A DNA stretch of 64,000 bases from Ylistrum balloti (taxonomy: Eukaryota), in the NCBI RefSeq assembly GCF_031769215.1, contig NW_026781957.1:496001-560000 (forward strand), in the 5' to 3' direction. Made by a program: the position numbers and the translations under genes. How positions within the stretch are numbered: position 1 is the stretch's first letter; each line of letters starts with the position of its first letter. Below the pieces are notes generated by a model. The model saw only the letters and a program-made list of their open reading frames with translations, was not told where the DNA came from and ran no database searches. Of the stretch, positions 3,938 to 45,109 are shown piece by piece.

Positions 3938-5789
3938 GATTTACCGCATTTCCGTTCTCTCTGTTGAGTTGATTATTTGTTTTGTTTTGTTGTTGGNNNN
4001 NNNNNNNNNNNNNNNNNNNNNNNNNNNNNNNNNNNNNNNNNNNNNNNNNNNNNNNNNNNNNNNNNNNNNNNNNNNNNNNNNNNNNNNNNNNNNNNNNNNN
4101 NNNNNNNNNNNNNNNNNNNNNNNNNNNNNNNNNNNNNNNNNNNNNNNNNNNNNNNNNNNNNNNNNNNNNNNNNNNNNNNNNNNNNNNNNNNNNNNNNNNN
4201 NNNNNNNNNNNNNNNNNNNNNNNNNNNNNNNNNNNNNNNNNNNNNNNNNNNNNNNNNNNNNNNNNNNNNNNNNNNNNNNNNNNNNNNNNNNNNNNNNNNN
4301 NNNNNNNNNNNNNNNNNNNNNNNNNNNNNNNNNNNNNNNNNNNNNNNNNNNNNNNNNNNNNNNNNNNNNNNNNNNNNNNNNNNNNNNNNNNNNNNNNNNN
4401 NNNNNNNNNNNNNNNNNNNNNNNNNNNNNNNNNNNNNNNNNNNNNNNNNNNNNNNNNNNNNNNNNNNNNNNNNNNNNNNNNNNNNNNNNNNNNNNNNNNN
4501 NNNNNNNNNNNNNNNNNNNNNNNNNNNNNNNNNNNNNNNNNNNNNNNNNNNNNNNNNNNNNNNNNNNNNNNNNNNNNNNNNNNNNNNNNNNNNNNNNNNN
4601 NNNNNNNNNNNNNNNNNNNNNNNNNNNNNNNNNNNNNNNNNNNNNNNNNNNNNNNNNNNNNNNNNNNNNNNNNNNNNNNNNNNNNNNNNNNNNNNNNNNN
4701 NNNNNNNNNNNNNNNNNNNNNNNNNNNNNNNNNNNNNNNNNNNNNNNNNNNNNNNNNNNNNNNNNNNNNNNNNNNNNNNNNNNNNNNNNNNNNNNNNNNN
4801 NNNNNNNNNNNNNNNNNNNNNNNNNNNNNNNNNNNNNNNNNNNNNNNNNNNNNNNNNNNNNNNNNNNNNNNNNNNNNNNNNNNNNNNNNNNNNNNNNNNN
4901 NNNNNNNNNNNNNNNNNNNNNNNNNNNNNNNNNNNNNNNNNNNNNNNNNNNNNNNNNNNNNCTTCTTCTTCTGGCGGACTTCTACTTCCGTTCTTTTTCT
5001 GTTCTCCAGTTTTCTATCTACCTTATATGTCTATATTTTTGTTGGTTGCAAAAACAAAGTGAACAACACAATATCTTGAAAACAGAAATAGATTTTAAAA
5101 AAATATCGATAACCTGATATTGTTAATAACTAGATTTTTTTGTTATCTTAACTGTTTATATAGTACAATATATCCCATCAAACTTTGGCTATAATAAACC
5201 TGTTATTTTATATTTACGAAATACAAGTAATTGCCTAAGGCAAAGTTACGTTTCCCATATGTATATTATACGTGTCGACCGTTGTGTTTTGTATCCTGCC
5301 TGAGGCCAGAGACAAGGTGATGTCTTACTTCTGTCTCAGCCTTGGGAACATCCATCACGTCCAAAACGACGTTTGTCCCATGTAGCTGTCAAAATACCAA
5401 CAATGGCGGCCACTGTCAAACTTGTGATACAACCTAACAAGACTGGATTAACACAGCCCTTGTAATATCTGATGGTCATCTGTTATCCCAGCTTCAGAAT
5501 CTACAGGTAAGTGTTTAACTTGTACATTTATTACTGTAGCCAAGGATATGTACTTTAGTCTGTAGGACGACAATTACGATATCTTTCATACAAATTTTGA
5601 CATTGGCGCAAAGACAGAAAGGGCGTGAGTCACAAAAACAGACAAAATGAAAATGATGATTGTTTCGATTGTTGTCGCTGACACTAACAAATATATTACA
5701 TACATCAATGAAAATGATATGAAAACTTCTAGTTCCTCTTGACTCGTAACCGTATCTAACGTTCCTGACCGAGGACATACAACTGTCCT

Positions 5790-7390
5790 TAAGACTAAAG
5801 TGTCAGGCCAATTTCATACCATGTTCTACCACTGTCCTTGTGACTAAAGTGTCATGTCACTATCATACCTTGTTCTACCACTGTCCTTGTAACTTAAGTG
5901 TCAGGTCACTATCATACCTTGTTCTACCACTGTCCTTGTGACTAAAGTGACAGGTCACTATCATACCTTGTTCTACCACTGTCCTTGTGACTAAAGTGAC
6001 AGGTCACTATCATACCTTGTTCTACCACTGTCCTTGTGACTAAAGTGTCAGGTCACTATCATACCTTGTCAGGTCACTATCATACCTTGTTCTACCAATG
6101 TCCTTGTGACTAAAATGTCAGTTCACTATCATACCTTGTACTACCACTGTCCTTGTGACTTAAGTGTCAGGTCACTATCATACCTTGTTCTACCACTGTC
6201 CTTGTGACTAAAGTGACAGGTCACTATCATACGTTGTTCTACCACTGTCCTTGTGACTAAAGTGACAGGACCTTGTCAGGTCACTATCATACCTTGTTCT
6301 ACCACTGTCCTTGTGACTGAAGTGTCAGGTCACTATCATACCTTGTTCTACCACTGTCCTTGTGACTAAAGTGTCAGGTCACTATCATACCTTGTTCTAC
6401 CACTGTCCTTGTGACTAAAGTGACAGGTCACTATCATACCTTGTCCTTGTGACTATCATACCCTGTTCTACCACTGTCCTTGTGACTAAAGTGTCAGGTC
6501 ACTATCATACCTTGTTCTACCACTGTCCTTGTGACTAAAGTGACAGGTCACTATCATACCTTGTCAGTTCACTATCATACCTTGTTCTACCACTGTCCTT
6601 GTGACTGAAGTGTCAGGTCACTATCATACCTTGTTCTACCACTGTCCTTGTGACTAAAGTGACAGGTCACTATCATACCTTGTTCTACCACTGTCCTTGT
6701 GACTAAAGTGACAGGTCACTATCATACCTTGTCAGTTCACTATCATACCTTGTTCTACCACTGTCCTTGTGACTGAAGTGTCAGGTCACTATCATACCTT
6801 GTTCTATCACTGTACTTGTGACTAAAGTGTCAGGTCACTATCATACCTTGTTCTACCAATGTCCTTGTGACTAAAGTGACAGGTCACTATCATACCTTGT
6901 CCTTGTGACTATCATACCTTGTTCTACCACTGCCCTTGTGACTAAAGTGACAGGTCACTATCATACCTTGTCAGGACACTATCATATCTTATTCTTTCAC
7001 TGTCCTTGTGACTAAAGTGACAGGTCACTATCATACCTTGTCAGGTCACTATCATACCTTATTCTACCACTTTCCTTGTGACTTAAGTGACAGATCGCTA
7101 TCATACCTTGTTCTAACACTGTCCTTGTGACTAAAGTGACAGGTCACTATCATACCTTGTTCTACCACTGTCCTTGTGACTAAAATGTCAGTTCACTATC
7201 ATACCTTGTCAGGTCACTATCATACCTTGTTCTACCACTTTCCTTGTGACTAAAGTAACAGGTCACTATCATACCTTGTTCCACTACTATCCTTGTGACT
7301 AAAGTGACAGGTCACTATCATACCTTGTTCTAACACTGCCCTTGTGACTTAAGTGTCAGGTAACTATCCTATCTTATTTTACCACTGTCG
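5790..7390. repeat. 49-bp tandem repeat with internal deletion variants, ~1.6 kb
   Basis: Unit GACTAAAGTGACAGGTCACTATCATACCTTGTTCTACCACTGTCCTTGT, with truncated copies (…ATACCTTGTCAGGTCACT…). Confidence 0.95.
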
Positions 7391-7764
7391 TTATGTCCTA
7401 CAGGTTGTATGACAGCTCTAGATCCATTTTCATCCCCTCCTGCTCTGCCGGTGTTTTGACAACCCTATGTTTATTTACCCTCTATCTGTCGCCTGCTGTT
7501 GTTCATCTTACTCTACTCTAATGTCTTGTTTTGAGTTAGATGTTAATAGTGGATGAAGACTTTAGGAATCTTGTATGGTAATTATCAGGATATCTCTTTA
7601 AGAAATTCTTTATGTGATATAAAGTTAGATGTGTCCGAGGTCCGATTGACTGACCAAGATTTGGATAATTTTCCTGTAACTTTCCAATGCTTTTCCAAAG
7701 GACTTTGTGGGTTCAGTTTTGTAAACTTTTCGGTTTTTTCTTAGTTCACCTGTAAATACTTGTT

Positions 7765-10560
7765 TTTGACCCTCACTCTCTCCTCCTCTCTTCTCCTCTC
7801 TCCTCCTTCTCCCCTCCCTCTTTCACCCTCATTCTCTCCTCCTCTTTCCCGCCTTATCCTCTCTCTCCCTCTCACCTCCCTCTTTCTCCTCATTCTCTCT
7901 CTCCTTCTCCCTCTTTCACTTTTCCTTCTCTCCCTTCTCTCACTCTCTCCTCCTCCTTCCTGCCTTATCCTCCTCCTCTCTTTTCCTTCTCACCTCCCTC
8001 TTTCATCCTCATTCTCTCCTCCTCCTTCTCCTCCTCCTTTCTCTCCTTCCCCCCTCCCTCTTTTACTCTCATTCTCTCCTCCTCCTCACTTTTCCTCCTC
8101 CTCATCTTTCTCTTCTCACCTCCCTCTTTCACTCTCTCTCTCCTCCTTCCTGCCTTATCCTCCTCCTCTCTCTTCTCCCCTCCCTCTTTCACCCTCCTCT
8201 CTCCTCCTCCATCCCGCCTCTCCTCCTCCTCTCTTTTCCTTCTCCCCTCCCTCTTTCATCCTCATTCTCTCCTCCTCTTTCCCGCCTTATCCTCCTCCTC
8301 TCTCTTCCTTCTCCCCTCCTTCTTTCACCTCCTCACTCTCTCCTCCTCCTTCCTGCCTTATCCTCCTCCCCTCTTTTCCGTCTCTCCCTCCCTCTTTCAC
8401 CTCTCCTCAATCTCTCCTCCTCCTTCCCGCCTCCTCCTCCCCCTCTCTCCTCCTTCTCACCTCCCTCTTTCACCCTCACTCTCTCCTCCTCCTTCCTGCC
8501 TTATCCTCCTCTCTTTCCCTTCTCACCTCCCTCTTTCATCCTCATTCTCTCCTCCTCCTTCCCGCCTTATCCTCCTCCTTTCTCTTCCTTCCCCCCTCCC
8601 TCTTTTACTCTCATTCTCTCCTCCTCCTTCCCGCCTTATCCTCCTCCTATCTTTCCTCTCTCCCTCTCTTTCACCCTCTCTCTCNNNNNNNNNNNNNNNN
8701 NNNNNNNNNNNNNNNNNNNNNNNNNNNNNNNNNNNNNNNNNNNNNNNNNNNNNNNNNNNNNNNNNNNNNNNNNNNNNNNNNNNNNNNNNNNNNNNNNNNN
8801 NNNNNNNNNNNNNNNNNNNNNNNNNNNNNNNNNNNNNNNNNNNNNNNNNNNNNNNNNNNNNNNNNNNNNNNNNNNNNNNNNNNNNNNNNNNNNNNNNNNN
8901 NNNNNNNNNNNNNNNNNNNNNNNNNNNNNNNNNNNNNNNNNNNNNNNNNNNNNNNNNNNNNNNNNNNNNNNNNNNNNNNNNNNNNNNNNNNNNNNNNNNN
9001 CTCTCTCCTCCTTNNNNNNNNNNNNNNNNNNNNNNNNNNNNNNNNNNNNNNNNNNNNNNNNNNNNNNNNNNNNNNNNNNNNNNNNNNNNNNNNNNNNNNN
9101 NNNNNNNNNNNNNNNNNNNNNNNNNNNNNNNNNNNNNNNNNNNNNNNNNNNNNNNNNNNNNNNNNNNNNNNNNNNNNNNNNNNNNNNNNNNNNNNNNNNN
9201 NNNNNNNNNNNNNNNNNNNNNNNNNNNNNNNNNNNNNNNNNNNNNNNNNNNNNNNNNNNNNNCTCTCCCTCCCTCTTTCATCCTCAATCTCTCCTCCTCC
9301 TTCCCACCTTATCCTCCTCCTCTCTTCTCCTCCTCCTTCTCCATTCTCACCTACTCACTCTCTCCTCCTCCTTCCCGCCTTATCCTCCTCCTCTCTTTTC
9401 CTTCTCACCTCCCTCTTTCACCCTCTCTCTCTCTCTCCCTCTATCNNNNNNNNNNNNNNNNNNNNNNNNNNNNNNNNNNNNNNNNNNNNNNNNNNNNNNN
9501 NNNNNNNNNNNNNNNNNNNNNNNNNNNNNNNNNNNNNNNNNNNNNNNNNNNNNNNNNNNNNNNNNNNNNNNNNNNNNNNNNNNNNNNNNNNNNNNNNNNN
9601 NNNNNNNNNNNNNNNNNNNNNNNNNNNNNNNNNNNNNNNNNNNNNNNNNNNNNNNNNNNNNNNNNTCTCCTCCTCCTTCCCACCTTATCCTCCTCCTCTC
9701 TTTCTCTCCCTCTCTCTCCCTCTCTCTCTCTCTCCTCTCTCTCTCTCCTCCTCCTTCCCGCCTTATCCTCCTCCTCTCTTTTCCTTCTCACCTCCCTCTT
9801 TCACCCTCACTCTCTCCTCCTCCTTCCCGCCTTATCCTCCTCCTCTCTTTTCCTTCTCCCCTCCCTCTTTCACCCTCACTCTCTCCTCCTCCTTCCCGCC
9901 TTATCCTCCTCCTCTCTTTTCCTTCTCACCTCCCTCTTTCACCCTCACTCTCTTCTCCCCCTTCCCGCCTTATCCTCCTCCTCTCTTTTCCGTCTCTCCC
10001 TCCCTCTTTCACCCTCACTCTCTCCTCCTCCTTCCTGCCTTATCCTCCTCCTCTCTTTTCCGTCCCTCCCTCCCTCTTCTACCCTCATTCTCTCCTCCTC
10101 CTTCCCGCCTTATCCTCCTCCTCTCTTTTCCGTCTCTCCCTCCCTCTTTCACCCTCACTCTCTCCTCCTCCTTCCCACCTTATCCTCCTCCTCTCTTTTC
10201 CGTCCCTCCCTCCCTCTTCTACCCTCATTCTCTCCTCCTCCTTCCCGCCTTATCCTCCCCCTCTCTCCTCCTTCTCACCTCCCTCTTTCACCCTCACTCT
10301 CTCCTCCTCCTTCCTGCCTTATCCTCCTCCTCTCTTTTCCTTCTCCCCTCCCTCTTTCACCCTCACTCTCTCCTCCTCCTTCCCGCCTTATCCTCCTCCT
10401 CTCTTTCCCTTCTCCCCTCCCTCTTTCACCCTCTCTCTCTCCTCCTCCTTCCTTCCTACTCCTCCTCCTTCTCCATTTTCACCTCCTCACTCTCTCCTCC
10501 TTTGTCTTTCCTCCCTCCCTTTTCCTCTCGTCCTTTTCTCTACCTTTTCCTTTCCTTCAT
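7765..10560. repeat. CT-rich polypyrimidine satellite (~69-bp unit), gapped
   Basis: Almost purely C/T on the + strand. CCCGCCTTATCC recurs at 9826 and 9895 (period 69). Three N gaps lie inside. Confidence 0.92.
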
Positions 10561-11429
10561 TGTCTTCGTCTTCCTTATTCTAAATACTATCATTAATGAT
10601 CAGCATCGTGAAGCTTTTATTTCATACAAAACTATTTGTGTATATTTAAGGAGTTGACCGTGACAGTAGGTAAAACATAAAAGCTAACGGAACAAACACA
10701 ATCTGTCATATACAAGTCATTGCTCACAGAGAATAAAACCAGACAGGTCTCCGAATTGATTGTTTTTATGATAACTTGTGAGGTAAGACATTCGTCAGGT
10801 ATCCTGGACACATACCACCATGCCTATATACTGTACACTCCCTGACAGTGGTGCTGTTATCTGATGGGAACTATTTATAACGGACTGTTGTCAGGTCGGT
10901 GGTAAGGGCGACAGCATTACAGCTGATCGATCGACGGACCTTGCGCCATGTCGTTATATCATTTCAAATTATCTTGTATGTTGAATTTTTTTTTTACTCG
11001 TGTTATGATGCTGTAAGACAAAATATCTACTTTCACTGTGTATCATAGAGCTTCTTAGTAGGGATATGAAATATACATATGATTATTTTAAAACATACCG
11101 ATTTTTTTCACTAATATTAATAACGGTAGATTTTTCCCCGCAAACATTGGTCATATCATAAAGCAATGAATATTCTAAATATACCGACATTATAAATTGC
11201 CTGTAATATGTCGAAAATACAAGACTGAAAATATTCCCGAAATTATACTATCGAATGTCAGCTAAAATAAATCCCCGAAGTCACAATACCGAGGTAATAA
11301 CACTATACCATTGGACGTATGTGGAAAACATTATCTGAGACCAAGCACTGACAGAATGAGTATATTACAAAAATATTAATATTTGACAACTGTTCACCTC
11401 TTAGGAACGAATAAATACTAAAATTACAT

Positions 11430-26720: not shown

Positions 26721-28238
26721 CTATGTATATAGCTTTGCACCTTGACAACGCACAAACAAGCTTAGTCGGTGATTTGTAAGGTTTACAAGTTCCTTTTAAA
26801 TTCACTCGACGATAAAGCTGCCCGAGGCTAGATACGTAATAGTGTAATAAACACCCAATGTATTGTTTTCATTGTGAGATGACAGTCGTTACTCCAATTA
26901 GACTGGCGATGATGTCATATGATTAAACAAAATGTAAGAGACCAACATAAGTATTGTGTAAAATAAAAATATCCCACGGGCGTGTACAGATTCAGTGAAG
27001 TCTCGGAAAATTCTCCTTAATGACGATCTCCTTTCACTCAAATTTTCCTTAAATTGATCGCGCAAACACTACCACTCGACCGAAACGGGTAGCGGAGTGC
27101 TGCAAGCACAAACCAATCATATGCTCCAATTTCAGTGAAATTGTTAGTCGCACCTGGTGTCGCAATCATAACTTGAATTACCTATAATGACAATGCTAAC
27201 CAGTAATGACGTACAACTTATCACAGTTTGTTCTTGTCGTTTGAATCCAGTTATTAAAAAATCGAGCCTCACACAAAACAAGCAGATATATACTTACTCC
27301 GAATACGGATTAAGAAAGACATAAGACATCTTTATGACTTTACACCACATGCATTATTATGGTTAATTTCTAGACTGACACGAGTGAAATTGATAACAAT
27401 TTTTTATGTGAAAAGTAGCGAAAATTCTTCGATCATTTTTCCTTGTAACTAAGACGAATTTCATTTTTACACTACTGAGACAATCATATCACAAAAATGT
27501 GCTACCCTTGATGAGAAGTATCTAGTGATAAACACCCTTGGCTAGGTAACTATATATATTTAGTGTAAATCCTTGTATTCACAGCAACAATTATGACCTA
27601 GTCGATCCTTTATTAAAAAGAACAACGAATCGACTGTGTACACATTAACACACACCAACAGCAGGACCGGAACCTCTAAATCATATCACCAAATTACTGA
27701 CGCAGATTGACACAAGGGGAGATCACTTTCCCTACACATGACGGTTTTCTCACATTATCTGTTATCATAGATACATACACGTATGTAACAGTATTATCGA
27801 AGTGTTTAAATTGCTTTATAGAGTAAATTATCGAAATCAATTCACCCATACAGTTATTTGTACATACACAATATAATAAGACAAGATTATTAAATTGAAA
27901 AAGAAATGCACATCTGTAGCATACAGAAATTTGAGTTTTATATGATAGCTACGTCACAAATCACGTGTAACAACCTTGAAATATAACATAAACTTTCGAC
28001 ATACAAATATTAAGGAAAGGAAATGTGCTTGCCAATAACATGCACTTTCTTCTTAAACATAGCGCAATTGATATACCCTGCAATGAAGATCTTATGTCAA
28101 AATTCTTAATGGAAATTCTAACTCGTTATTCCAAATCATTTTATCTCATACAGACTCAATCACTCTGATATAATTGTATGCTTTTTGCTATTTTTAGATA
28201 CATCGTTGACATGAAACTCATCTGAGTCTGCATGCGGT

Positions 28239-29537
28239 ATGGAGAACGACACAGCCGGAAACGCGGTGTCTGTAAAAGACGAAATTTCTTATGAAAACGA
28301 ATCAATTTCAAACGTTAAACCGCGAAAACGAGAGACAGCAAGTTCACAAGAAGGAATCGGTTATGAACATCACGGTCCAAGATATCAGAGAAGAATTTCT
28401 CAGCCAGAACGTAAAGTCAGCTTCCAACTGGATATAAACAACATTCCATCACACGCTGACCTGTATGATGACACCTGTCCAACCCGTAGTCCAAGGGTGA
28501 GTTTCTCAGGAAGAGAAGGTGATGGTAACCATATTCCGAATGAAAGAAAAGCGAAAGAGAGTCGGTCACCCCAGAGAAGTCCGAAAGTCAGTTTTTCACT
28601 GGGATCCGGCGAAGGAAACCCAATACCAAACAGTCGCACAGGAAAGAAAACAAACGACAGTAAATCTCCAAGAGTAAGTTTTTCTCTTGGACCTGGCGAG
28701 GGAAACCCCATCCCAAACGAACGTACAAATAAAAATTCTACAAAAGAAAGCAAACCATCACAGAGAAGTCCTAAAGCCAACCTTACTATCAACACAAGCC
28801 TAGCTCCAGATGAACAAAATGCATCCTCTCCGTCTTCTTCTTCTTCGGAAGAAACAGATAGACCCCGTCGGCCCAGTCGTCAAAGACGATCAGGAGTAGT
28901 CAATAGTCCGGATATAGGTCGGGTGTCGTCAGCTGTATTCTTGGATAACCTTCCTTCCACCCAACCGAAAGAACAAGACGACCAGTCATCATCAACAATA
29001 TCAGACAGTGTGAATACAGACATCACCTCGACAACGAGAGCGAACTGCGAGGAAGATCTCGGTCAGGTAAACTGTGGGTATGAAAGCGATGAAATCCTGG
29101 ATAACATCGCCCTCAAAGTCGAGAGCATCATACAAGATGCCCAGACTAGCGAAATGAAGAATGGTTATTATCATGGCGGCGTCGATAGCAAGGACGGCGG
29201 ACCCGAAGGCGACAACTACGAAGATGAAGACGATGAAGACGACCAGGGTTTGACATTTGACCTCCCACCAAAGGACACACTAGAAAACACCAAATATGAG
29301 ACACCGGTGAAAAAAGAAAGCAAAAATATAGATTTTGGTACACCGCTCTCAATAATGAAACATAAAAAATCGTCATTTGCTGATAGTAATTACTCCGACG
29401 ATTCTACCTCCCCAGGAAGGAGTTCCCTCGCGCGTCACTTAAGGAAAGACTCTATAGCTTTGACAAGTGAGAAGATGGGTCAGATTCGAGATTTACAGAG
29501 ACACTATAAGATGATGAAGAAGAACAATATGCCCAGT
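28239..29537 (+). CDS. MYORG-like: MYORG-family GH31 type II membrane protein, coding exon 1 (433-aa disordered cytosolic N-terminus)
   Basis: An in-frame TGA at 28212 fixes the ATG at 28239. Ser/Arg/acidic low-complexity sequence. Donor AGT|gtaagt at 29537/29538 (phase 0) matches the phase-0 acceptor at 29811/29812. Confidence 0.8.
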
Positions 29538-29811
29538 GTAAGTATTTTTCAACTCCACTACAACGTTGATATATATCAACATGCTTGCATTCACGAGACA
29601 ATTAACCGTATTGTTACCGTTAATTAATTACTGATACTTCAAAACTTGGTTTAGAAAATTCAAAAGAATATTATTCGGGGAAAACTTAAAATTTCGACGT
29701 ACATGTATTGGATCTAACAATATTCTAAATGATTACATTGATACAAATAAACAATTATTAAAAACTGATAATCTTATCAAATGAATGATAAAGAATTCTA
29801 TAACTTTCCAG

Positions 29812-31833
29812 TTTTGGAAGAGGAAGACGGCGTCCCTTAAGAAGTACCAGTTACATGTCGCAGTGGCCACCATGTTCATGTTTGTCGTGACCATCGTCGC
29901 TATAGGCTGGCACTTCCATGATCAGTTCCATGAAATATGGAATGCCAACCAGCGAGTCTTCTTCCAGCCGTCTAGTCGAGTTCTTACTCTGAGAGACCCT
30001 GATGATAACAAAATAATGGCGAATCTCGGTGTCAGCATACCCATCTGGCTTCTGCCTTCACACTGCGCAAATGAAAAAGAAACAGGATCGTTCACCTGTC
30101 TAAAATGGAAGAATAATGCGGTATTAAGGATCCGCCACTTCGGATCCAAAAATGTAAATTGTTATAATATAACCTGGGAAGTCCTTCGCGAGGATCTTTT
30201 TCCAGAGGACTGTTTTGTTATAGGTACCAATGTATGGTTCGGACCGTCTAACACATCAAATGCTCTGTGGTCGTTGGACAAAGTTAACTTCACATTTACA
30301 GCTGCAGAGACAGATTTTTATCCAGCCGGGACGTTTAGTTCGGCAATGGAACGGTACTGGATATCCTCGGGAGGAGGTTCCATCTATGTGCATAATGAAG
30401 ATCCGGTGTCTGTCAAATGGAATCTCAAGAATGACAACAAAATATGCTTGGTTGGGAATAACAATGGCAGCTTTTACGGACAGAAGAGAACTAGGGGAAC
30501 AGATCTGAACTATACCGTTTGTCACGGCACAAATCCGGTCACTACACATAAATTCGTACGAAAGTTGTTACCCAAAGGACCAAACAACCTGCCATCCTGG
30601 CGTAGCTTAAAATATCCGGTTTGGTCCACGTTCGGCGTAGCACAATCTTACGACATCACTGACAATGATATTTATGGTTTAGCAAAAGAAATTAACGAAA
30701 GAAACTTGAATTGCAGTTTTATTGAAATTGATGGAAAATGGGAACAACATTTCGGGGATTTAGACTTTGATTCAAAAAGATTTCCTAACATAACAGCTGT
30801 TGTAAAATATGTGAAATCATTAGGTTATTCCCTCTCAGTTGAGGTCAGTCCGTATTTTGGCTATAAATCTATCAATTTTGACGAAGGGATAGATGACGGG
30901 AACTTCATCCTTGATGCAGGAAGAAAAGTTCCAGCGTTCCTTCCCATGCAGAACAGTATTTATGCAATGCTGGACATCACCAACCCATCAGCAGAATCAT
31001 GGATGAAAATGAAAATGATAAGACTTTCTTCTACATACAAGATCACAGCATTCCACATATTTTACCGCAATCGATCATGGATGCCATTTAGTCCATCTTT
31101 CCATGCAGCGGAAGTAACACCAAGTATGATCAGAAACCTTTTTGCAGAACTTGTGACGTCATTTAATGAAGTGGATGCAGATATTGTCGAAGGAACATCG
31201 GGATCACAAAATCAAGTTTCTTTTATAAATATCCCAACCAAGGTAAGCATTCAGTCCGAGGGCGAGTGTATTACTGGTGTCATAGAAACGGCCTTGACTC
31301 TGGGAATTATGGGATATCCATTTGTGATCGTTGACGGAATGTTTGTACAGGAGCCAAATGCAGGTCTTGAAGAGTTCGACTTGCCCAATCGACAGCTGTA
31401 CATTCGATGGATGCAAATGGCGTCCTTCTTTCCGGCAATGAAATTCGCAGTGCCGCCATGGTCTTTTGATGACGAGTGTGTAGAATTAGCGCGGAACGCA
31501 TCAGCACTACACCAGGAATACACTGTCAAAATCATTAACGAAATTCAAAAGGAAATAAAAAATGGAGACCCAATCATTCGACCAATATGGTGGACTGCTC
31601 CATCTGATGAAGAAGCACACAGGGCCAAGAACGAGTTCATGATCGGCGATTCCCTCTTGGTTGCCCCAGTGGTATGTGATCACGTCACGGAACGCCATAT
31701 CTACCTTCCGGAGGGCTTCTGGACCGATATGTTAACGGGAGATTTTATCTACGGGGAGAGATGGCTACTTAACTATGAAGTAAAGATAAACCAAATACCA
31801 CACTTTAAAAGGAAAACTGTCATAGGACACTAG
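29812..31833 (+). CDS. MYORG-like: MYORG-family GH31 type II membrane protein, coding exon 2 (TM plus GH31 domains); apparently catalytically inactive
   Basis: Acceptor ttccag|. TM LHVAVATMFMFVVTIVAIGW. GH31/MYORG motifs: WFGP, ERYWISSGG, PVWSTF, IEIDGKW..FGDLDFD..RFP, LGIMGYPF, YIRWMQMASFFPAMKF..PPW, PIIRPIWW, EFMIGD.LLVAPV, IYLP.G.W. Whole protein ~1106 aa. Confidence 0.93.
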   Translation, partial: FWKRKTASLKKYQLHVAVATMFMFVVTIVAIGWHFHDQFHEIWNANQRVFFQPSSRVLTLRDPDDNKIMANLGVSIPIWLLPSHCANEKETGSFTCLKWKNNAVLRIRHFGSKNVNCYNITWEVLREDLFPEDCFVIGTNVWFGPSNTSNALWSLDKVNFTFTAAETDFYPAGTFSSAMERYWISSGGGSIYVHNEDPVSVKWNLKNDNKICLVGNNNGSFYGQKRTRGTDLNYTVCHGTNPVTTHKFVRKLLPKGPNNLPSWRSLKYPVWSTFGVAQSYDITDNDIYGLAKEINERNLNCSFIEIDGKWEQHFGDLDFDSKRFPNITAVVKYVKSLGYSLSVEVSPYFGYKSINFDEGIDDGNFILDAGRKVPAFLPMQNSIYAMLDITNPSAESWMKMKMIRLSSTYKITAFHIFYRNRSWMPFSPSFHAAEVTPSMIRNLFAELVTSFNEVDADIVEGTSGSQNQVSFINIPTKVSIQSEGECITGVIETALTLGIMGYPFVIVDGMFVQEPNAGLEEFDLPNRQLYIRWMQMASFFPAMKFAVPPWSFDDECVELARNASALHQEYTVKIINEIQKEIKNGDPIIRPIWWTAPSDEEAHRAKNEFMIGDSLLVAPVVCDHVTERHIYLPEGFWTDMLTGDFIYGERWLLNYEVKINQIPHFKRKTVIGH

Positions 31834-32086
31834 TAAGATCAAACATACCTTGTCAGTGTTTTGACTTCAGGATAATTTCAGACCTTGATTATTCATCACT
31901 GCATTCGTTGTTTGGAGATTTGTCAGCCTTTACGAGTAGGAAGTCACGTAGTGGGCATGGGTGATAAATCTTACTGTGAAACGAACTGGTGTTGGTGTGT
32001 TTGCAACAAGGAGTAAACCACACCCTTATCACATACATGCAATGAAAGTTGAACGTTGAATAATGTATTGTTCTCTTATATAATGT

Positions 32087-32158
32087 ACCCCCGCTATGGT
32101 TCGAACCAAGGACCTCTGATTTACTGGTCTTACATTTAACTACTAGAACTAAATAGAA
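32087..32158 (-). mobile_element. tRNA-derived SINE head or tRNA pseudogene remnant
   Basis: Minus strand reads TAGTTCTAGTAGTTAA (A-box-like) … AGAGGTCCTTGGTTCGAACC (B box/T-arm, 32098-32107). No intact acceptor stem seen. Confidence 0.5.
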
Positions 32159-33454
32159 GTTTTATGTATTTGTGACTAGTATTTACCCGATCTATATTCT
32201 CCCACTCCAGAAAAGACCTCTTTCCCAAGTTTTCCAGGAGTTTCAGCGTGTGCTTGTGAAAGTAATGCTTCAGGAGTACTGACTGGGTTTCTGGTTTCAC
32301 GCTCATCACATCCAGCAGGAAGCGATATCATGTAGGCAGTGAAAATTTTGATCATTTCTTGAAGTCGCTCCAAAACGCCACTTCCAAACAGAAACCCTCA
32401 AGGAGCAGGGTTGAAAACCTAAGAACATGTACATTGTTTGTTATATCTTTTTACAAGGACAAATTTCATGATGTATGTTTGAAAAAATGACATTTCTAAA
32501 CTGCTTAGTGTGCCACACGTTCGCAGAAGAACGGAGGGACTTGTCAAGTCACTGAAATGTATCTTGTGTAAGGTTTTTGTTATAAGCAAGTCATTCTTAA
32601 TGAATTGAATATTTTGTTAAACCGGACTTTTGACGGAAAACAGTTGTTGTAAGTGCTATTAAAGTTTTCGAGATTTAAAACGTCACTACATTGTAGTTAA
32701 GTTCTGGTTACTGCGTGCGAGTCTGAGCGATTGTACGAACACGTGGTCGATGTAGAACAAAACAGATTCTTCGCCTAATATGATCCGTTTATTTCATACT
32801 GTATTCGGATATTTCCTTACAGAGCAAAGTATCAAAGATGTATTGAGATTTTACAGATAGTTATATTAACATGACTTACCAACCCTACAGCTCCTGTATC
32901 AACATGGACGCCCACACAGCTATTGTAATAAAACCACACAAGTTATCTCCCTTTCAATGTAAGCCAACACCTTCGTCATCAACCAACTATCGATGTAAAC
33001 GTCAAGTTGTTATATTTGATCATACTCTTGTTTAGACGTTTATGAAAGTGTTTAAACATCTTCAAATGTGTTTTTAGTTGTGTTGATATCATTGGTTTTT
33101 TCTGTATCAATGACTTAGCATTTCAATGATTGGAAAAATTCACATTGATATAAGTATAAAACCATATTTCCAATTAAATGTCCGGAAATGGGACACGTAG
33201 AGGTTAACTATAATTGAGGGCATGGCATGTAGCATGGTCTGAACCACTTATTAAACATCGAGTTCACCTTTTTCTAAGTACATTTCTCATCTTAAAGTCA
33301 TCATCTGTCATTTGTATGATTTTATCAATTTTCATTTGTTGATATTTACCCTAAAATTCAAAGTGAAGAAATTGAATAAAAATTCAACTACAGAAATAAA
33401 TTGTGTTTGAAGTGTTTATCTGATTTCTAATGGTTATCGGAGTATTGGAAAATG

Positions 33455-39898: not shown

Positions 39899-40550
39899 CT
39901 GTCAATACATTATCACCCATAATTACGTTACTTAGTGTAACGGCATGAAGACAATGTATACAACATTACTGACTAGATAAAAACATCAACGTGACAACAG
40001 AATCATAATACAAAATATTAAAAAGTCATACGGAACCTCATGAAAAAAGTACAAGGAGAATAAGACCAGCGTTTCGGATGAGTTAGCGTCTTCTGTTCTG
40101 TCGACAAAATGAAGCTAAACCAAAAATTATAACGCTTGTCTTTATAACTTGATATCTGTAAATATATTTTCCAATAGAAACTCTATGTAAATGTTCTGTA
40201 TCGTAACAAATAGACTGAAAAAATGGACCTTGACACAATATCCGAAGGATAAATATCACAAAAATCAGGAATTCGTCAATAAAGGACCTGTGTTGTCTGA
40301 AAAATGGACTCCATTATGTTTAAAGTGCATTTACTGGTGTTATTTTGTGAAAGTAAAATATACAAATAGAGCCCACATTTTCTCACTCTACAAATTGTGG
40401 AAGAGTCCTGTGCTGTTTTGTGGTTTTTAAATTCAAGCTGAAAATGACCGAACAGAAGTAACTTTAGGTGAGGAACATAATTCGACACCTTCATACGAGG
40501 CTGAATTTAGCATATTGATACAAACCATATAAGATTCTAGTAATTCTCAC

Positions 40551-42002
40551 CTCTATATAATCGTATACATCCGGACCAACTGCCTGAAGGTTAAGGATTG
40601 TGAATCCCATATTTCCATTGCGTTCATCGTCAAAGACGGAGAATATTTCGCTCTCCGATCGTAGTACAGCGCCGTTGATTTTTTCCACGATACCCTTTGG
40701 GTGTTCCTTGAGGTAATTACAGCCCCGTAGGTTGTCCTGTGGACATCGGTCCTTCACTCCGTTAAGTCCTAGTCCCAGGGCGTACACTGCATTCATCGTG
40801 TGTATCACTCGTTGGTCATCTACGAAGTTAGATATGTCCTGTTCAGAGAATTGTACGTCCTTGTCACATGTTTTCCCGATCCTTTTATCGAAGTTTCCCT
40901 CGGGATCACACTTAAAATACTCTCTCCAGTATTCTCGATACCATGTATTTGTATCCTCCAAATCCGGCGTTCTATTTTTAAGATAGGTTTCGAATCCGAT
41001 GTCAGCGGATTTTATTTCAAACTTGAAGCTGATAGCCCCTTTAGCGACACTTCCGAGGTTCGACATAATGTTGATACTATCCCCCCAGTCCTCGCTGGCT
41101 AGGAACACAAAATCATACTTTAACGAATTCTGTTTCACTCGTCTTTTCATTTCCGTCAACAGATCGACAATTCTGCCCTCTGTTCCAAAGTATACGATAA
41201 CTTCTTCGCCGTTTTTCTTTATATCTAAAGATATTTGATAGAGCTCGCCCTGATTTCCCGACTCTGAGAGCTCTATAGGATCTGTCACACATATTCCGCT
41301 GGAATTTGCCTTCTCTATGAACAGAGACTTACCTTTGCTCCCATAGTTATTGTTAACGTATATCATACCTACTCGTTTCCAACCCATATGCTCTATAATT
41401 TTAACCATGGCTCCTACTTGTGTGACGTCGCTCGGAACTGTCCTTAAAAAGTAAGGATAATTGATGACGTCATCAAGATCTGGAGACGAAGAAGCGTAAG
41501 ATACGGATGGCAGTTTCAAACGAGTGAAAAGAAGTGTCAATGGGACAGTTACACCACTCGGATAAGGTCCAATCACTCCCAACACCTTTGTAGGGTCGAT
41601 AGTTTCTCCAGCGGGGCCAAACGTTAGTCTACTGCTACCAGACAGAAACTGAGTGACTATCAGACTGCCCACTGTGGAACTGTAACAGTCATCGAAAGCC
41701 AGACCGCCAAATTTGATGCCAGTCATATTCCGAAGTCGGTGTATGGCGTGGAAAAACGATTCCTGAACTATCACATCTACGGAGTAATTTCTAAATTTTC
41801 CACATGAAAATGCATGTTCGTCGTCCAATGGATCATGCATAGAAAACATTCCCAACAACAGCACATCACCATCGACGTATCTGTAAGGTATGGGTGGTAG
41901 GGAAGTACAATTGGAGCAGTTACTAGCACAGGACGAAAGCTGCTGGTGACTGGCGATGAGTGACGAATTTAGTGACAGACTGTTGTTCTTGTAGGTTCCC
42001 AC
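40551..42002 (-). CDS. Tandem-VFT single-pass receptor, exon 5 (linker and entire second Venus flytrap domain)
   Basis: Acceptor ttctccag| and donor GAG|gtgaga, 1452 nt, phase 0/0. mGluR-like motifs: GDVLLLGMFSMH, FDDC, VIGPYPS, VSYASSSPDL.D..YPYFLRTVPSD, MGW..VGMIY..NNYG, ASEDWG, WYREYW..YF.C, AVYALG.GL. Confidence 0.93.
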
Positions 42003-42410
42003 CTGGAGAAGTGAAGAAAGAGTCTGTTAGTCATACATTAGAAAGCAGCCAGCTTACAATAAATATTTTGGTATACATAGAATAACAAACTATCTTATTG
42101 AATGTAATTTACGTTGCTATCACAATTTTTTGGTTATTGGTGGTCAGTATACAAGCTAGAACTTAAATACCGTATAACGGATTTTTTTTCGAGAGGATGC
42201 TATTTTCGCTATTTTGGTGTACATTAAAGTGATTGCGAAAATCGCAGTCCTTGAAATTATGAAACCCTTGTGTATCAGATATCCTTTTACAACTAGATCG
42301 CGAAAGTTTGATTTGTTTGATTCGTTAAAACATAATTCAATCATTGTTTTTAAAAATATCGCGAAAATTCTGACTCGTGTAAATTACCATCAATACAGTA
42401 TATTCGTTGT

Positions 42411-43835
42411 CATCAAACAGCTTGCCTATCATGTCCGCCGAACTAGCACTCAAGCTAGGCAGTATTTAGTCATCATCAAACAGCTTGCCTATCATGTCCG
42501 CCGAACTAGCACTCAAGCTAGGCAGTATTTAGTCATCATCAAACAGCTTGCCTATCACGTCCGCCGAACTAGCACTCAAGCTAGGCAGTATTTAGTTGTC
42601 ATCAAACAACTTGTCTATCATATCCGCCGAACTAGCACTCAAACTAGGCAGTATTTAGTCATCATCAAACAACTTGCCTATCACGTCCGCCGAACTAGCA
42701 CTCAAGCTAGGCAGTATTTAGTCATCATCAAACAACTTGCCCATCATATCCGCCGAAATAGCACTCAAGCTAGGCAGTATTTAGTTGTCATCAAACAACT
42801 TGCCCATCATATCCGCCGAACTACCACTCAAGCTAGTCAGTATTTAGTCATCATCAAACAACTTGCCCATCATATCCGCCGAACTACCACTCAAGCTAGG
42901 CAGTATTTAGTCATCATCAAACAGCTTGCCTATCACGTCCGCCGAACTAGCACTCAAGCTAGGCAGTATTTAGTTGTCATCAAACAACTTGTCTATCATA
43001 TCCGCCGAACTAGCACTCAAACTAGGCAGTATTTAGTCATCATCAAACAACTTGCCTATCACGTCCGCCGAACTAGCACTCAAGCTAGGCAGTATTTAGT
43101 CATCATCAAACAACTTGCCCATCATATCCGCCGAAATAGCACTCAAGCTAGGCAGTATTTAGTTGTCATCAAACAACTTGCCCATCATATCCGCCGAACT
43201 ACCACTCAAGCTAGTCAGTATTTAGTCATCATCAAACAACTTGCCCATCATATCCGCCGAACTACCACTCAAGCTAGGCAGTATTTAGTCATCATCAAAC
43301 AACTTGCCCATCATATCCGCCGAACTAGCACTCAATCTAGGCAGTATTTAGTTGTCATCAAACAACTTGCCCATCATATCCGCCGAACTAGCACTCAAGC
43401 TAGGCAGTATTTAGTTGTCATCAAACAACTTGCCCATCATGACCGCCGAACTAGCACTCAAGCTAGGCAGTATTTAGTTGTCATCAAACAACTTGCCCAT
43501 CATGACCGCCGAACTAGCACTCAAGCTAGGCTGTTTCTAGTCATCATCAAACAACTTGCCTATCACGTCCGTCGAACTACCACTCAAGCTAGGCAGTATT
43601 TAGTTGTCATTAAACAACTTGCCCATCATATCCGCCGAACTACCACTCAAGCTAGGCAGTATTTAGTTGTCATCAAACAACTTGTCTATCATATCCGCCG
43701 AACTACCACTCAAGCTAGGCAGTATTTAGTTGTCATCAAACAACTTGCCCATCATGACCGCCGAACTAGCACTCAAGCTAGGCTGTTTCTAGTCATCATC
43801 AAACAACTTGCCCATCATTACCGCCGAACTAGTAC
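42411..43835. repeat. 63-bp intronic tandem repeat, ~22 copies, with a 378-bp higher-order duplication
   Basis: Unit CATCAAACAGCTTGCCTATCATGTCCGCCGAACTAGCACTCAAGCTAGGCAGTATTTAGTCAT. The same variant block recurs at 42598 and 42976. Lies in intron 4 of the receptor gene. Confidence 0.95.
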
Positions 43836-44230
43836 TAATAGTTGTCATTAAATGTAGGTAAGCGATCACAAGTGTATTTGTGCTGCTAACGAATTTGTGA
43901 CAGCAAAGCTTTTGTTCTGCTGATATTATCTGGACCAGAATAGGCAACAGGTTTCTAACACAGACAAAATATGCACTTTTTCACGTTTTTAGTCTGAGTT
44001 GAGAAATAAATACATCGTTACCTACTGAAGTGTTTAATGTTCGTGGTTTTCCCGTTCATTTCGTGGGTATACTATCAACGAATTGATCACGAACTGTTAA
44101 TTAATATCAGCAGATTAACTGAGTCGTAAAGTCAAGTATCCATAAAATTATTTAAAAAATGATCCCCACAAAATTTTCTGATTCAAAAGTACCTACTGAT
44201 AGTATTTAAACACCATTTTCCAGAACTTAC

Positions 44231-45109
44231 CTTTACAAATGACTTCCTGGTAACATTATACATATTTATATCATAAAGTGGACTTGACCTGTCGGGGAGT
44301 ATGTTACCATGGGAATCGAATCGAACCTGTCGCCCTAAGTCAATAAGTTCCTTAGGTCCGGCAGTGTAGCTTAAATTACTGTAATCCACGCTAGTATTCT
44401 TCATAATGTTAAGGAACTCACTGTCCAAATAACCTTCAAATTTGTCACAAATAACAGTGTAATTTCTACATTTCTTGAACATGGCTTGTTTCAGAGCTGT
44501 CGCGATGACATACACAGCGTCAACGATTGGCATGATAAAGTCGTTTCTCCACTCAATCTTTGTAGTCGGGTTATGCGTCCTGTATTCAGCGATCAGTCTA
44601 TCCACAGAAGATGATGTGTTAGTAACGGTCGACGATGCATCCCACTTCTCCTCAAAAAATTGTCGTGCTTCTTGTATTAACACCGATGACGTCGACACCG
44701 TTATGGTACCGTCAGACACGTGATCAGCGTCATTAAACACCTCAACGCTAGTACCCACAAAGTCAGACATTATCCAGTGAAAGTCTCTATACATTTCATT
44801 GTTATTGAAAAGCTGGTTCAGTCTTATCAACAAAATTTCAATGACGTTCTTTTGACCGAAGTACACGATGCCGAGTTTTCGATCCTTTGCCAAACTCTTC
44901 TGATGTAAGAGAGCTTGAAAAAAGTTCTCGAGTTTGACGATTTCAGCGAAGTTCTCAGTTGCATTTATTGCCTGAACCACGTCAACACATATGCCGTTTT
45001 CTCTAGCCAGTTGTAGTATCTTCTCCATGCCACTTAACCCGTAGTTGTCATTGGTGTGAAGGGCAGCAATGTACGTCCATTTCAAATCCTTTAACAACTG
45101 TATCACCAC
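44231..45109 (-). CDS. Tandem-VFT single-pass receptor, exon 4 (first VFT, main part)
   Basis: Acceptor cctaacag| and donor AAG|gtaagt, 879 nt, phase 0/0. LKWTYIAALHTNDNYG, ICV, WIMSDFVG, VDAVYVIA.AL, RFDSHGN, YDI. Confidence 0.92.

Follow-up and report, generated by a model that had tools for sequence, protein, structure and literature searches.

What can a protein with the fold of a glycosidase do once both of its catalytic aspartates are gone? This question is raised by a two-exon gene of the scallop Ylistrum balloti, located in a stretch of 64,000 nucleotides (contig NW_026781957.1, positions 496,001 to 560,000 of the forward strand). The whole stretch is called the window below, and all positions refer to it. 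Judged from its sequence, the gene product is a type II membrane glycoprotein with a cytoplasmic tail of 445 amino acids (aa), one helix and a luminal or extracellular part of 640 aa, which has the fold of glycoside hydrolase family 31 (GH31). Taken as a whole, the protein is probably best explained as a paralogue of the MYORG-type GH31 alpha-galactosidase that has been conserved without catalytic function. The parts of this reading differ in firmness. The residue replacements make it very probable that the gene encodes a conserved dead enzyme. By analogy with other non-catalytic glycosidase folds, the chances are about even that the ectodomain is a scaffold, binding a partner or ligand without using the ancestral sugar site. 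Docking of protein phosphatase 1 (PP1) by the tail is a tentative suggestion drawn from motifs.

Active-site positions

In human MYORG, D463 serves as the nucleophile and D520 as the acid/base; the contact residues are W321, D353, D354, W426, K461, R504, R517 and D213 (PMC9491548). A sequence-only reading of the window had placed the motifs FHIFYRN, FINIPTKVS and EIDG against the corresponding segments of this enzyme and had concluded that both catalytic aspartates were replaced. All three motifs are present at the codons assigned to them (Table 1), and three alignments agree on the replacement of the pair by Phe850 and Thr909 and on the equivalence of Gly741 to D354. In a phmmer search of the PDB, human MYORG was the top match (7qqf/7qqh, E 4e-88), with FKFDAGE set against FHIFYRN and FRLVDRDS against INIPTKVS. 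The 7qqh chain is the D520N mutant, and its N lands in the Thr909 column, which fixes the acid/base column. The same mapping was obtained from a profile alignment of 313 family members and from an hhalign comparison of the clade described below with canonical relatives, the two alignments having been built apart with MAFFT.

The full correspondence is W321 to F707, D353 to D740, D354 to G741, W426 to Q813, K461 to H848, D463 to F850, R504 to E893, R517 to N906 and D520 to T909. Val892, proposed by phmmer as the counterpart of R504, was rejected, since the profile alignment and hhalign both give Glu893. For D213 the counterpart could be either of two adjacent residues, Thr600 or Asp601, and canonical relatives do not conserve D213 in any case.

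The canonical set comprised 113 proteins retrieved with a canonical Lingula protein and spanned vertebrates, lamprey, amphioxus, hemichordates, echinoderms, annelids, brachiopods, molluscs and insects. Each of the nine active-site positions is kept in 106-113 of these 113 relatives. The scallop protein retains one of the nine near-invariant residues, the Asp353 equivalent (Asp740); beyond the catalytic pair, six of the seven other sugar-contact residues are replaced. Because both aspartates and these six further residues have been exchanged, ancestral catalysis and galactose binding are considered lost. On the evidence of the residues, the double-displacement mechanism of GH31 is unavailable to the protein, as is the galactose-binding mode of MYORG.

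Gene model, fold and selection

The ectodomain is encoded in an open reading frame (ORF) at 29785-31833 of the plus strand, which is open throughout in the ORF list of the window. The splice acceptor reads ttccag/TTT at 29811/29812, and the donor of the preceding exon reads AGT/GTAAGT at 29537/29538. When exon 1 (433 codons) and exon 2 (673 codons and a stop) are joined, the translation is an exact match to a protein model of 1106 aa, P0001. Given the open frame, the canonical acceptor and this match, the earlier description of exon 29812-31833 as intact holds. P0001 was named "SITS-binding protein-like" by NCBI, presumably after the Torpedo 'SITS-binding protein', which we take to be a GH31 membrane protein of the MYORG family. 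A Pfam scan of the exon 1 tail gave no domain match.

The intron occupies an identical position in Pecten maximus (same codon boundary) and in the source species of P0003, and Dreissena has an intron at about the same junction between tail and helix. P0003 was tried as a possible transcript and rejected, being a genomic contig that carries the same acceptor site. The Dreissena gene contains at least two introns, and a one-intron model did not fit it. On Logan contigs of about 4 kb, a related bivalve shows uninterrupted ORFs of 1213 aa, as expected of spliced mRNA. The exact protein model, together with these ORFs, uninterrupted despite the introns of the Dreissena gene, indicates that tail and fold are truly joined in one protein.

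The hydropathy scan gave a single membrane helix. Its N-terminal flank is rich in K/R (FWKRKTASLKK), its C-terminal flank is free of K/R, and no N-terminal signal peptide is apparent in the sequence of P0001. For these reasons the orientation is assigned as type II, like that of MYORG.

A MYORG-like GH31 fold had also been proposed earlier, and it is well supported. The GH31 TIM-barrel and C-terminal domains (PF01055, PF21365) score 73.1 and 72.9 bits in Pfam, with cut-offs of 23.5 and 24.4; the barrel match ends at ORF residue 423, just short of the nucleophile motif. An AlphaFold2 model of residues 465-1106, made from a 61-sequence alignment, has a predicted local distance difference test (pLDDT) value of 91.3 and a predicted template modelling (pTM) score of 0.91. 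Its best PDB matches in Foldseek are the MYORG crystal structures (7QQF/7QQG/7QQH), with TM scores of 0.83 by query and 0.87 by target. Human MYORG (KIAA1161/NET37) is thus the closest match both in sequence and in structure. Both are type II proteins, with the N-terminus in the cytoplasm, a single helix and a GH31 ectodomain that is N-glycosylated. Unlike MYORG, the scallop protein has eight active-site replacements, a new Cys pair and the 445-aa tail. The published MYORG construct starts at residue 80, after the tail and helix, and MYORG was found to dimerise through a hydrophobic insert interface (PMC9491548). In the scallop protein the seven residues of this interface read Y, F, I, D, V, F, I, each identical or a conservative exchange. 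Across lineage A, the branch of the family that includes this gene, hydrophobic residues are kept at the six non-polar positions of the interface, whereas E407 is not conserved there.

In the fold, the orthologue from Pecten maximus, P0002, is 89% identical, and it shares with the Ylistrum protein all nine N-X-S/T sequons of the ectodomain. When Ylistrum is compared with Pecten, the GH31 exon has a ratio of non-synonymous to synonymous substitution rates (dN/dS, omega) of 0.047-0.055 and the tail one of 0.11-0.14; these values are approximate, since dS is about 1.1-1.3 and near saturation. The dN/dS check suggested with the sequence-only reading therefore gives omega of about 0.05 and bears out selection on the fold. 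Comparison of the window with a second DNA data set revealed six coding differences, four synonymous and two non-synonymous, the latter both in the tail. Within the 2022 bases of the GH31 exon, the second individual shows one synonymous change and no protein change. Omega near 0.05, the conserved intron position, the nine conserved sequons and the intact predicted fold exclude decay. The gene is not decaying and is under strong purifying selection.

The differences from the second data set are denser in the flanks, with nine substitutions and a 26-base deletion in 27300-28238 and eight substitutions in 31834-32800.

A molluscan clade with a cysteine pair

Word-indexed protein searches, made with the protein and with a clade profile, gave 7-8 matches; among the eight relatives thus obtained, all those covering both catalytic positions have neither Asp. 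An exhaustive profile search gave 12,024 matches, of which the 150 best cluster representatives were analysed, 145 of them in a FastTree phylogeny. In this tree, the scallop protein falls within a clade of 38 rows (support 100), and 36 of the 38 are without both aspartates. All source-named members of the clade are molluscs of three classes, namely bivalves, gastropods and cephalopods; taxon names are known for NCBI-sourced representatives, and 'mollusc-only' rests on these named members.

The clade consists of two lineages. Lineage A, which holds the gene described here, includes scallops, Tegillarca, Pinctada, Dreissena, Sinanodonta, Lottia, Nucella, Lymnaea, Bulinus, Aplysia and Octopus. 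Lineage B includes Mizuhopecten, Solemya, Gigantopelta, Plakobranchus and Octopus. In an IQ-TREE analysis of 53 named rows under a site-heterogeneous model, support was 94 for A, 99 for B and 99 for the remaining sequences. Within A, cephalopods, bivalves and gastropods group separately in the same tree, as orthologues would.

Independently of the trees, the clade is marked by two cysteines, Cys919 and Cys1055. Among 291 sequences, 70 have both, 221 have neither and none has a single one; all 70 belong to the A and B rows or to their clusters. Asp at the acid/base column occurs in none of these 70 clade members. At the nucleophile column it is found in six clade sequences from two clusters (P0011 with P0158-P0161, from an unnamed heterodont bivalve, and P0142). 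The acid/base Asp is still gone in them, and the nucleophile-column Asp is probably a secondary change.

Canonical paralogues with the full signature occur in other scallops: P0218 in Pecten maximus, P0221 in Mizuhopecten and P0235 in Argopecten. Two trees place these proteins in the canonical set, together with the vertebrate MYORG rows, and the Ylistrum gene in the separate clade. By tree position, then, the Ylistrum gene is a paralogue and not an orthologue of vertebrate MYORG. It belongs, as far as the sampled sequences indicate, to an old mollusc-wide clade of paralogues that exists beside an intact canonical MYORG-like enzyme, and it is not a scallop peculiarity. Should the root fall among the canonical enzymes, the most parsimonious history would be a single loss of catalysis with a gain of the Cys pair, followed by the A/B duplication, all before the split of cephalopods, gastropods and bivalves. 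The divergence of these three classes is Cambrian.

The lack of both aspartates is not confined to this clade. Among the 145 nearest cluster representatives, 79 are without both, many of them outside the molluscan clade (P0025-P0154; for example, P0030 from Lingula and P0056 from Rhodnius). Another 26 representatives retain the nucleophile only, such as an insect lineage with the signature GANEKYDVST. Catalysis thus seems, from these alignments, to have been lost repeatedly in the MYORG-like family, the most divergent rows not having been individually checked in alignment. In a literature search, no paper describing MYORG-family proteins as pseudoenzymes was found.

MYORG is a human disease gene; the disease is primary familial brain calcification. 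The paper on its structure expects metazoan orthologues to be alpha-galactosidases (PMC9491548). Members of the molluscan clade are labelled 'myogenesis-regulating glycosidase' or 'alpha-glucosidase' in databases, and these names should be corrected. Contrary to the expectation of that paper, the proteins belong to a large, old and selected branch of the MYORG family, which has no catalysis and no ancestral sugar site; this branch has kept its fold and topology and, it seems, the dimer interface, and has gained the Cys pair and a long tail. The canonical enzyme and its dead paralogues within the same genomes form a natural separation-of-function set. Pseudoenzymes are common in enzyme families, and the result is solid rather than startling.

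Possible roles of the ectodomain and tail

The preferred reading of the ectodomain is a binding or scaffolding module, which would act as a receptor, a co-receptor or an ancillary subunit of the CD98hc or Klotho type. Precedents exist in other glycosidase families. CD98hc (SLC3A2) and rBAT (SLC3A1) are GH13-like heavy chains of amino-acid transporters and type II single-pass glycoproteins. The extracellular glycosidase fold of CD98hc is non-catalytic and has ancillary, trafficking and partner-binding functions, and its N-terminal cytoplasmic tail is used for interactions. The scallop protein differs from both in being GH31 and not GH13 and in having no membrane-proximal Cys that could form a disulfide with a light chain, its first ectodomain Cys lying about 50 residues past the helix. 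Alpha- and beta-Klotho are membrane-anchored co-receptors with GH1-like dead glycosidase domains; in beta-Klotho the former pocket is reused for a peptide ligand. The Klothos resemble the scallop protein as dead, membrane-anchored glycosidase folds under selection, and they offer a precedent for a remodelled, partly conserved pocket. Unlike it, they are type I proteins with tandem GH1 domains and a short tail, and are vertebrate-specific. The scallop protein may be regarded as the GH31 counterpart of the dead-glycosidase membrane proteins of GH13 (CD98hc) and GH1 (Klotho).

Binding by such a module could involve either the remodelled pocket or another surface. In the 24 lineage A sequences compared, Asp740 is present in 19, Gly741 in 21, Arg/His848 in 19, Glu/Asp893 in 18 and Thr/Ser909 in 18, and Tyr851 is found in 88%. 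The positions of W321, W426, R517 and the nucleophile are among the more variable columns, and the nucleophile position across the clade is occupied by T, S, A, F, H, I, K, L and others. This pattern argues against the keeping of the ancestral galactose site, and it leaves room for a remodelled pocket, lined by Asp740, Gly741, Arg/His848, Tyr851, Glu/Asp893 and Thr/Ser909, whose ligand need not be a sugar. Dimerisation through the MYORG insert interface might also have been retained, its hydrophobic residues having been kept.

The tail is considered separately. The scallop tail contains four [RK]VSF motifs, whereas shuffled sequences lead one to expect 0.11. A repeated SP[RK]VSFS..GEGN.IPN module accounts for three of the four. 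The first has the counterpart R[RK]VSF...PLND in Dreissena, Sinanodonta and two unnamed bivalves. Tails of 240-580 aa recur in many N-terminally complete members of lineage A, those of Aplysia and Octopus being about 90 and 170 aa long; the canonical scallop proteins measure only about 660 aa in total. It is conceivable that this long, disordered, lineage A-specific tail is a phospho-regulated docking platform. R[RK]VSF, amplified to four copies in scallops, would then be a candidate PP1 site, and RKDSIAL could be a site for a kinase of the basophilic type. A known example of the RVxF docking motif for PP1 is RRVSF of KNL1. The scallop motif resembles it in reading R[RK]VSF, in lying within a disordered stretch and in containing a Ser whose phosphorylation could abolish binding, and it occurs in several bivalve orders. 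It differs in being a candidate by motif here and in its absence from gastropod, cephalopod and ark-shell orthologues. The earlier description of a one-helix protein with an RVxF tail therefore stands as regards the type II helix and the four [RK]VSF motifs, and PP1 recruitment stays a motif prediction.

Several points weigh against the preferred reading as a whole. The run search for Ylistrum found one run only, which is genomic DNA, as its contigs span the intron and flanks; no RNA run was found. The near-saturated dS noted above loosens the estimate of omega. [RK]VSF is absent from the compared tails of Tegillarca, gastropods and Octopus, and PP1 docking is therefore not the general mechanism of the clade. 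Finally, the conservation of Gly741, Tyr851, acidic 893 and Thr/Ser909 within the clade is compatible with some binding of a small ligand or glycan at the remodelled site.

The last point bears on the best-surviving alternative, which was proposed in the sequence-only reading and is regarded as unlikely. It treats the dead GH31 domain as a lectin or glycan sensor, from which the ligand signal is relayed through the single helix to PP1 on the RVxF tail. Dead glycosidase folds that bind glycans do exist. In chitinase-like lectins of GH18, such as YKL-40, the catalytic residue is lost, the aromatic sugar-binding residues are kept and glycans are still bound. The retained Asp740 and the residues conserved within lineage A would suit a sensor of this kind, as would the excess of [RK]VSF motifs, the first of them common to other bivalves. 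The scallop protein shares the glycosidase fold and the catalytic loss with the chitinase-like lectins, but it is also without the aromatic residues: both aromatic platforms (W321, W426) are replaced together with K461, R504, R517 and D354, and the W321, W426 and R517 positions vary freely in the clade. Retention of a sugar site in the manner of chitinase-like lectins was rejected on account of this loss, and the earlier proposal of a lectin domain is weakened by it. The relay to PP1 is further opposed by the orthologues without RVxF and by the fact that no mechanism is known by which one helix could transmit a signal to a phosphatase docked on the tail.

Somewhat less likely still is a regulatory role, in which the dead paralogue pairs with the canonical MYORG-like alpha-galactosidase, as a heterodimer joined at the conserved insert interface, and controls the activity, location or stability of that enzyme, the tail serving in regulation. 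The MYORG dimer itself is formed by the hydrophobic insert (PMC9491548), the seven interface positions are hydrophobic or conservative in lineage A, and canonical paralogues coexist in scallop genomes. Regulation of active enzymes by dead paralogues is an established pattern (e.g. PMC5201418). However, the interface residues are hydrophobic family-wide, so that their retention may be purely structural, and the fact that both dead lineages, A and B, have lasted so long points to independent functions.

It is very doubtful that the protein is still an enzyme working with unconventional residues, for instance Glu893 with Asp740, or Tyr851. The frequency of an acidic residue at 893, of Asp740 and of Tyr851 in lineage A could be read in this way. 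Against it, the nucleophile position is highly varied and no clade member has the acid/base Asp; residue 851, next after the nucleophile on a beta-strand, would be expected to face away from the pocket. To our knowledge, no GH31 enzyme works without the Asp pair.

The weakest alternative, a decaying pseudogene or an annotation artefact fusing two unrelated exons, could appeal to the lack of RNA from Ylistrum itself and was rejected as next to impossible in view of the 1106-codon open frame, the low omega, the deep conservation of intron position, sequons and orthologues in three mollusc classes, and the full-length uninterrupted Logan ORFs of a related bivalve.

Within the preferred reading of a conserved dead paralogue, a more speculative and rather improbable version can be formulated. 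The clade would then represent dead MYORG-like receptors about half a billion years old, whose disulfide-braced pocket binds a non-sugar ligand or a membrane partner, and whose bivalve tail recruits PP1 through a phospho-switchable R[RK]VSF. If true, this would link an extracellular or luminal glycosidase fold with a cytoplasmic phosphatase in a way not known before. It might also hint at non-catalytic roles of the MYORG family in other animals, where further lineages without the catalytic pair exist.

Table 1. Features of the Ylistrum balloti gene in window coordinates
Feature	Position	Strand	Remarks
Coding exon 1	28239..29537	+	433-aa cytoplasmic N-terminal tail, rich in Ser, Pro and charged residues; joined translation equals P0001
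KVSF motif 1, aa 59-62	28413..28424	+	context RKVSF; copy matching R[RK]VSF...PLND of other bivalves
RVSF motif 2, aa 86-89	28494..28505	+	in the repeated SP[RK]VSFS..GEGN.IPN module
KVSF motif 3, aa 116-119	28584..28595	+	
RVSF motif 4, aa 145-148	28671..28682	+	
RKDSIAL motif, aa 402-408	29442..29462	+	in all six named bivalve tails aligned; about 45 aa ahead of the helix
Intron	29538..29811	+	GT..AG; falls between codons
Coding exon 2	29812..31833	+	juxtamembrane part, then the membrane helix and the ectodomain with its GH31 fold; 673 codons plus stop
Single membrane helix, about aa 449-466	29857..29910	+	from hydropathy scan
EIDG motif	30724-30735	+	D353 kept as Asp740, D354 replaced by Gly741
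Phe850	31060-31062	+	at nucleophile Asp463 of MYORG; within FHIFYRN, 31051-31071
Glu893	31189-31191	+	at substrate-binding Arg504; charge reversal in former pocket
Thr909	31237-31239	+	at acid/base Asp520; within FINIPTKVS, 31222-31248
Cys919	31267-31269	+	first of the clade Cys pair; Gly in 99% of canonical relatives
Cys1055	31675-31677	+	second of the clade Cys pair; mostly Glu in canonical relatives

Other parts of the window contain unrelated features. A plus-strand ORF at 21-1091 encodes leucine-rich repeats with a TIR domain after them (Pfam LRR_8, TIR) and resembles the C-terminal portion of a Toll-like receptor gene that extends beyond the start of the window. The GC fraction falls to 0.19 in 4001-6000, where an N or masked stretch or AT-rich repeats may be present. 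A 965-codon ORF at 7760-10657 has no Pfam match, and the region of 8-10 kb shows a GC skew of -0.95 and an AT skew of -0.78; rather than a gene, this ORF most likely represents a simple repeat rich in pyrimidines. The segment 24000-26000, with a GC skew of +0.55, an AT skew of +0.39 and overlapping minus-strand ORFs, probably consists of repeats. On the minus strand, at 40491-45109, two ORFs carry ANF_receptor (Venus-flytrap) domains.

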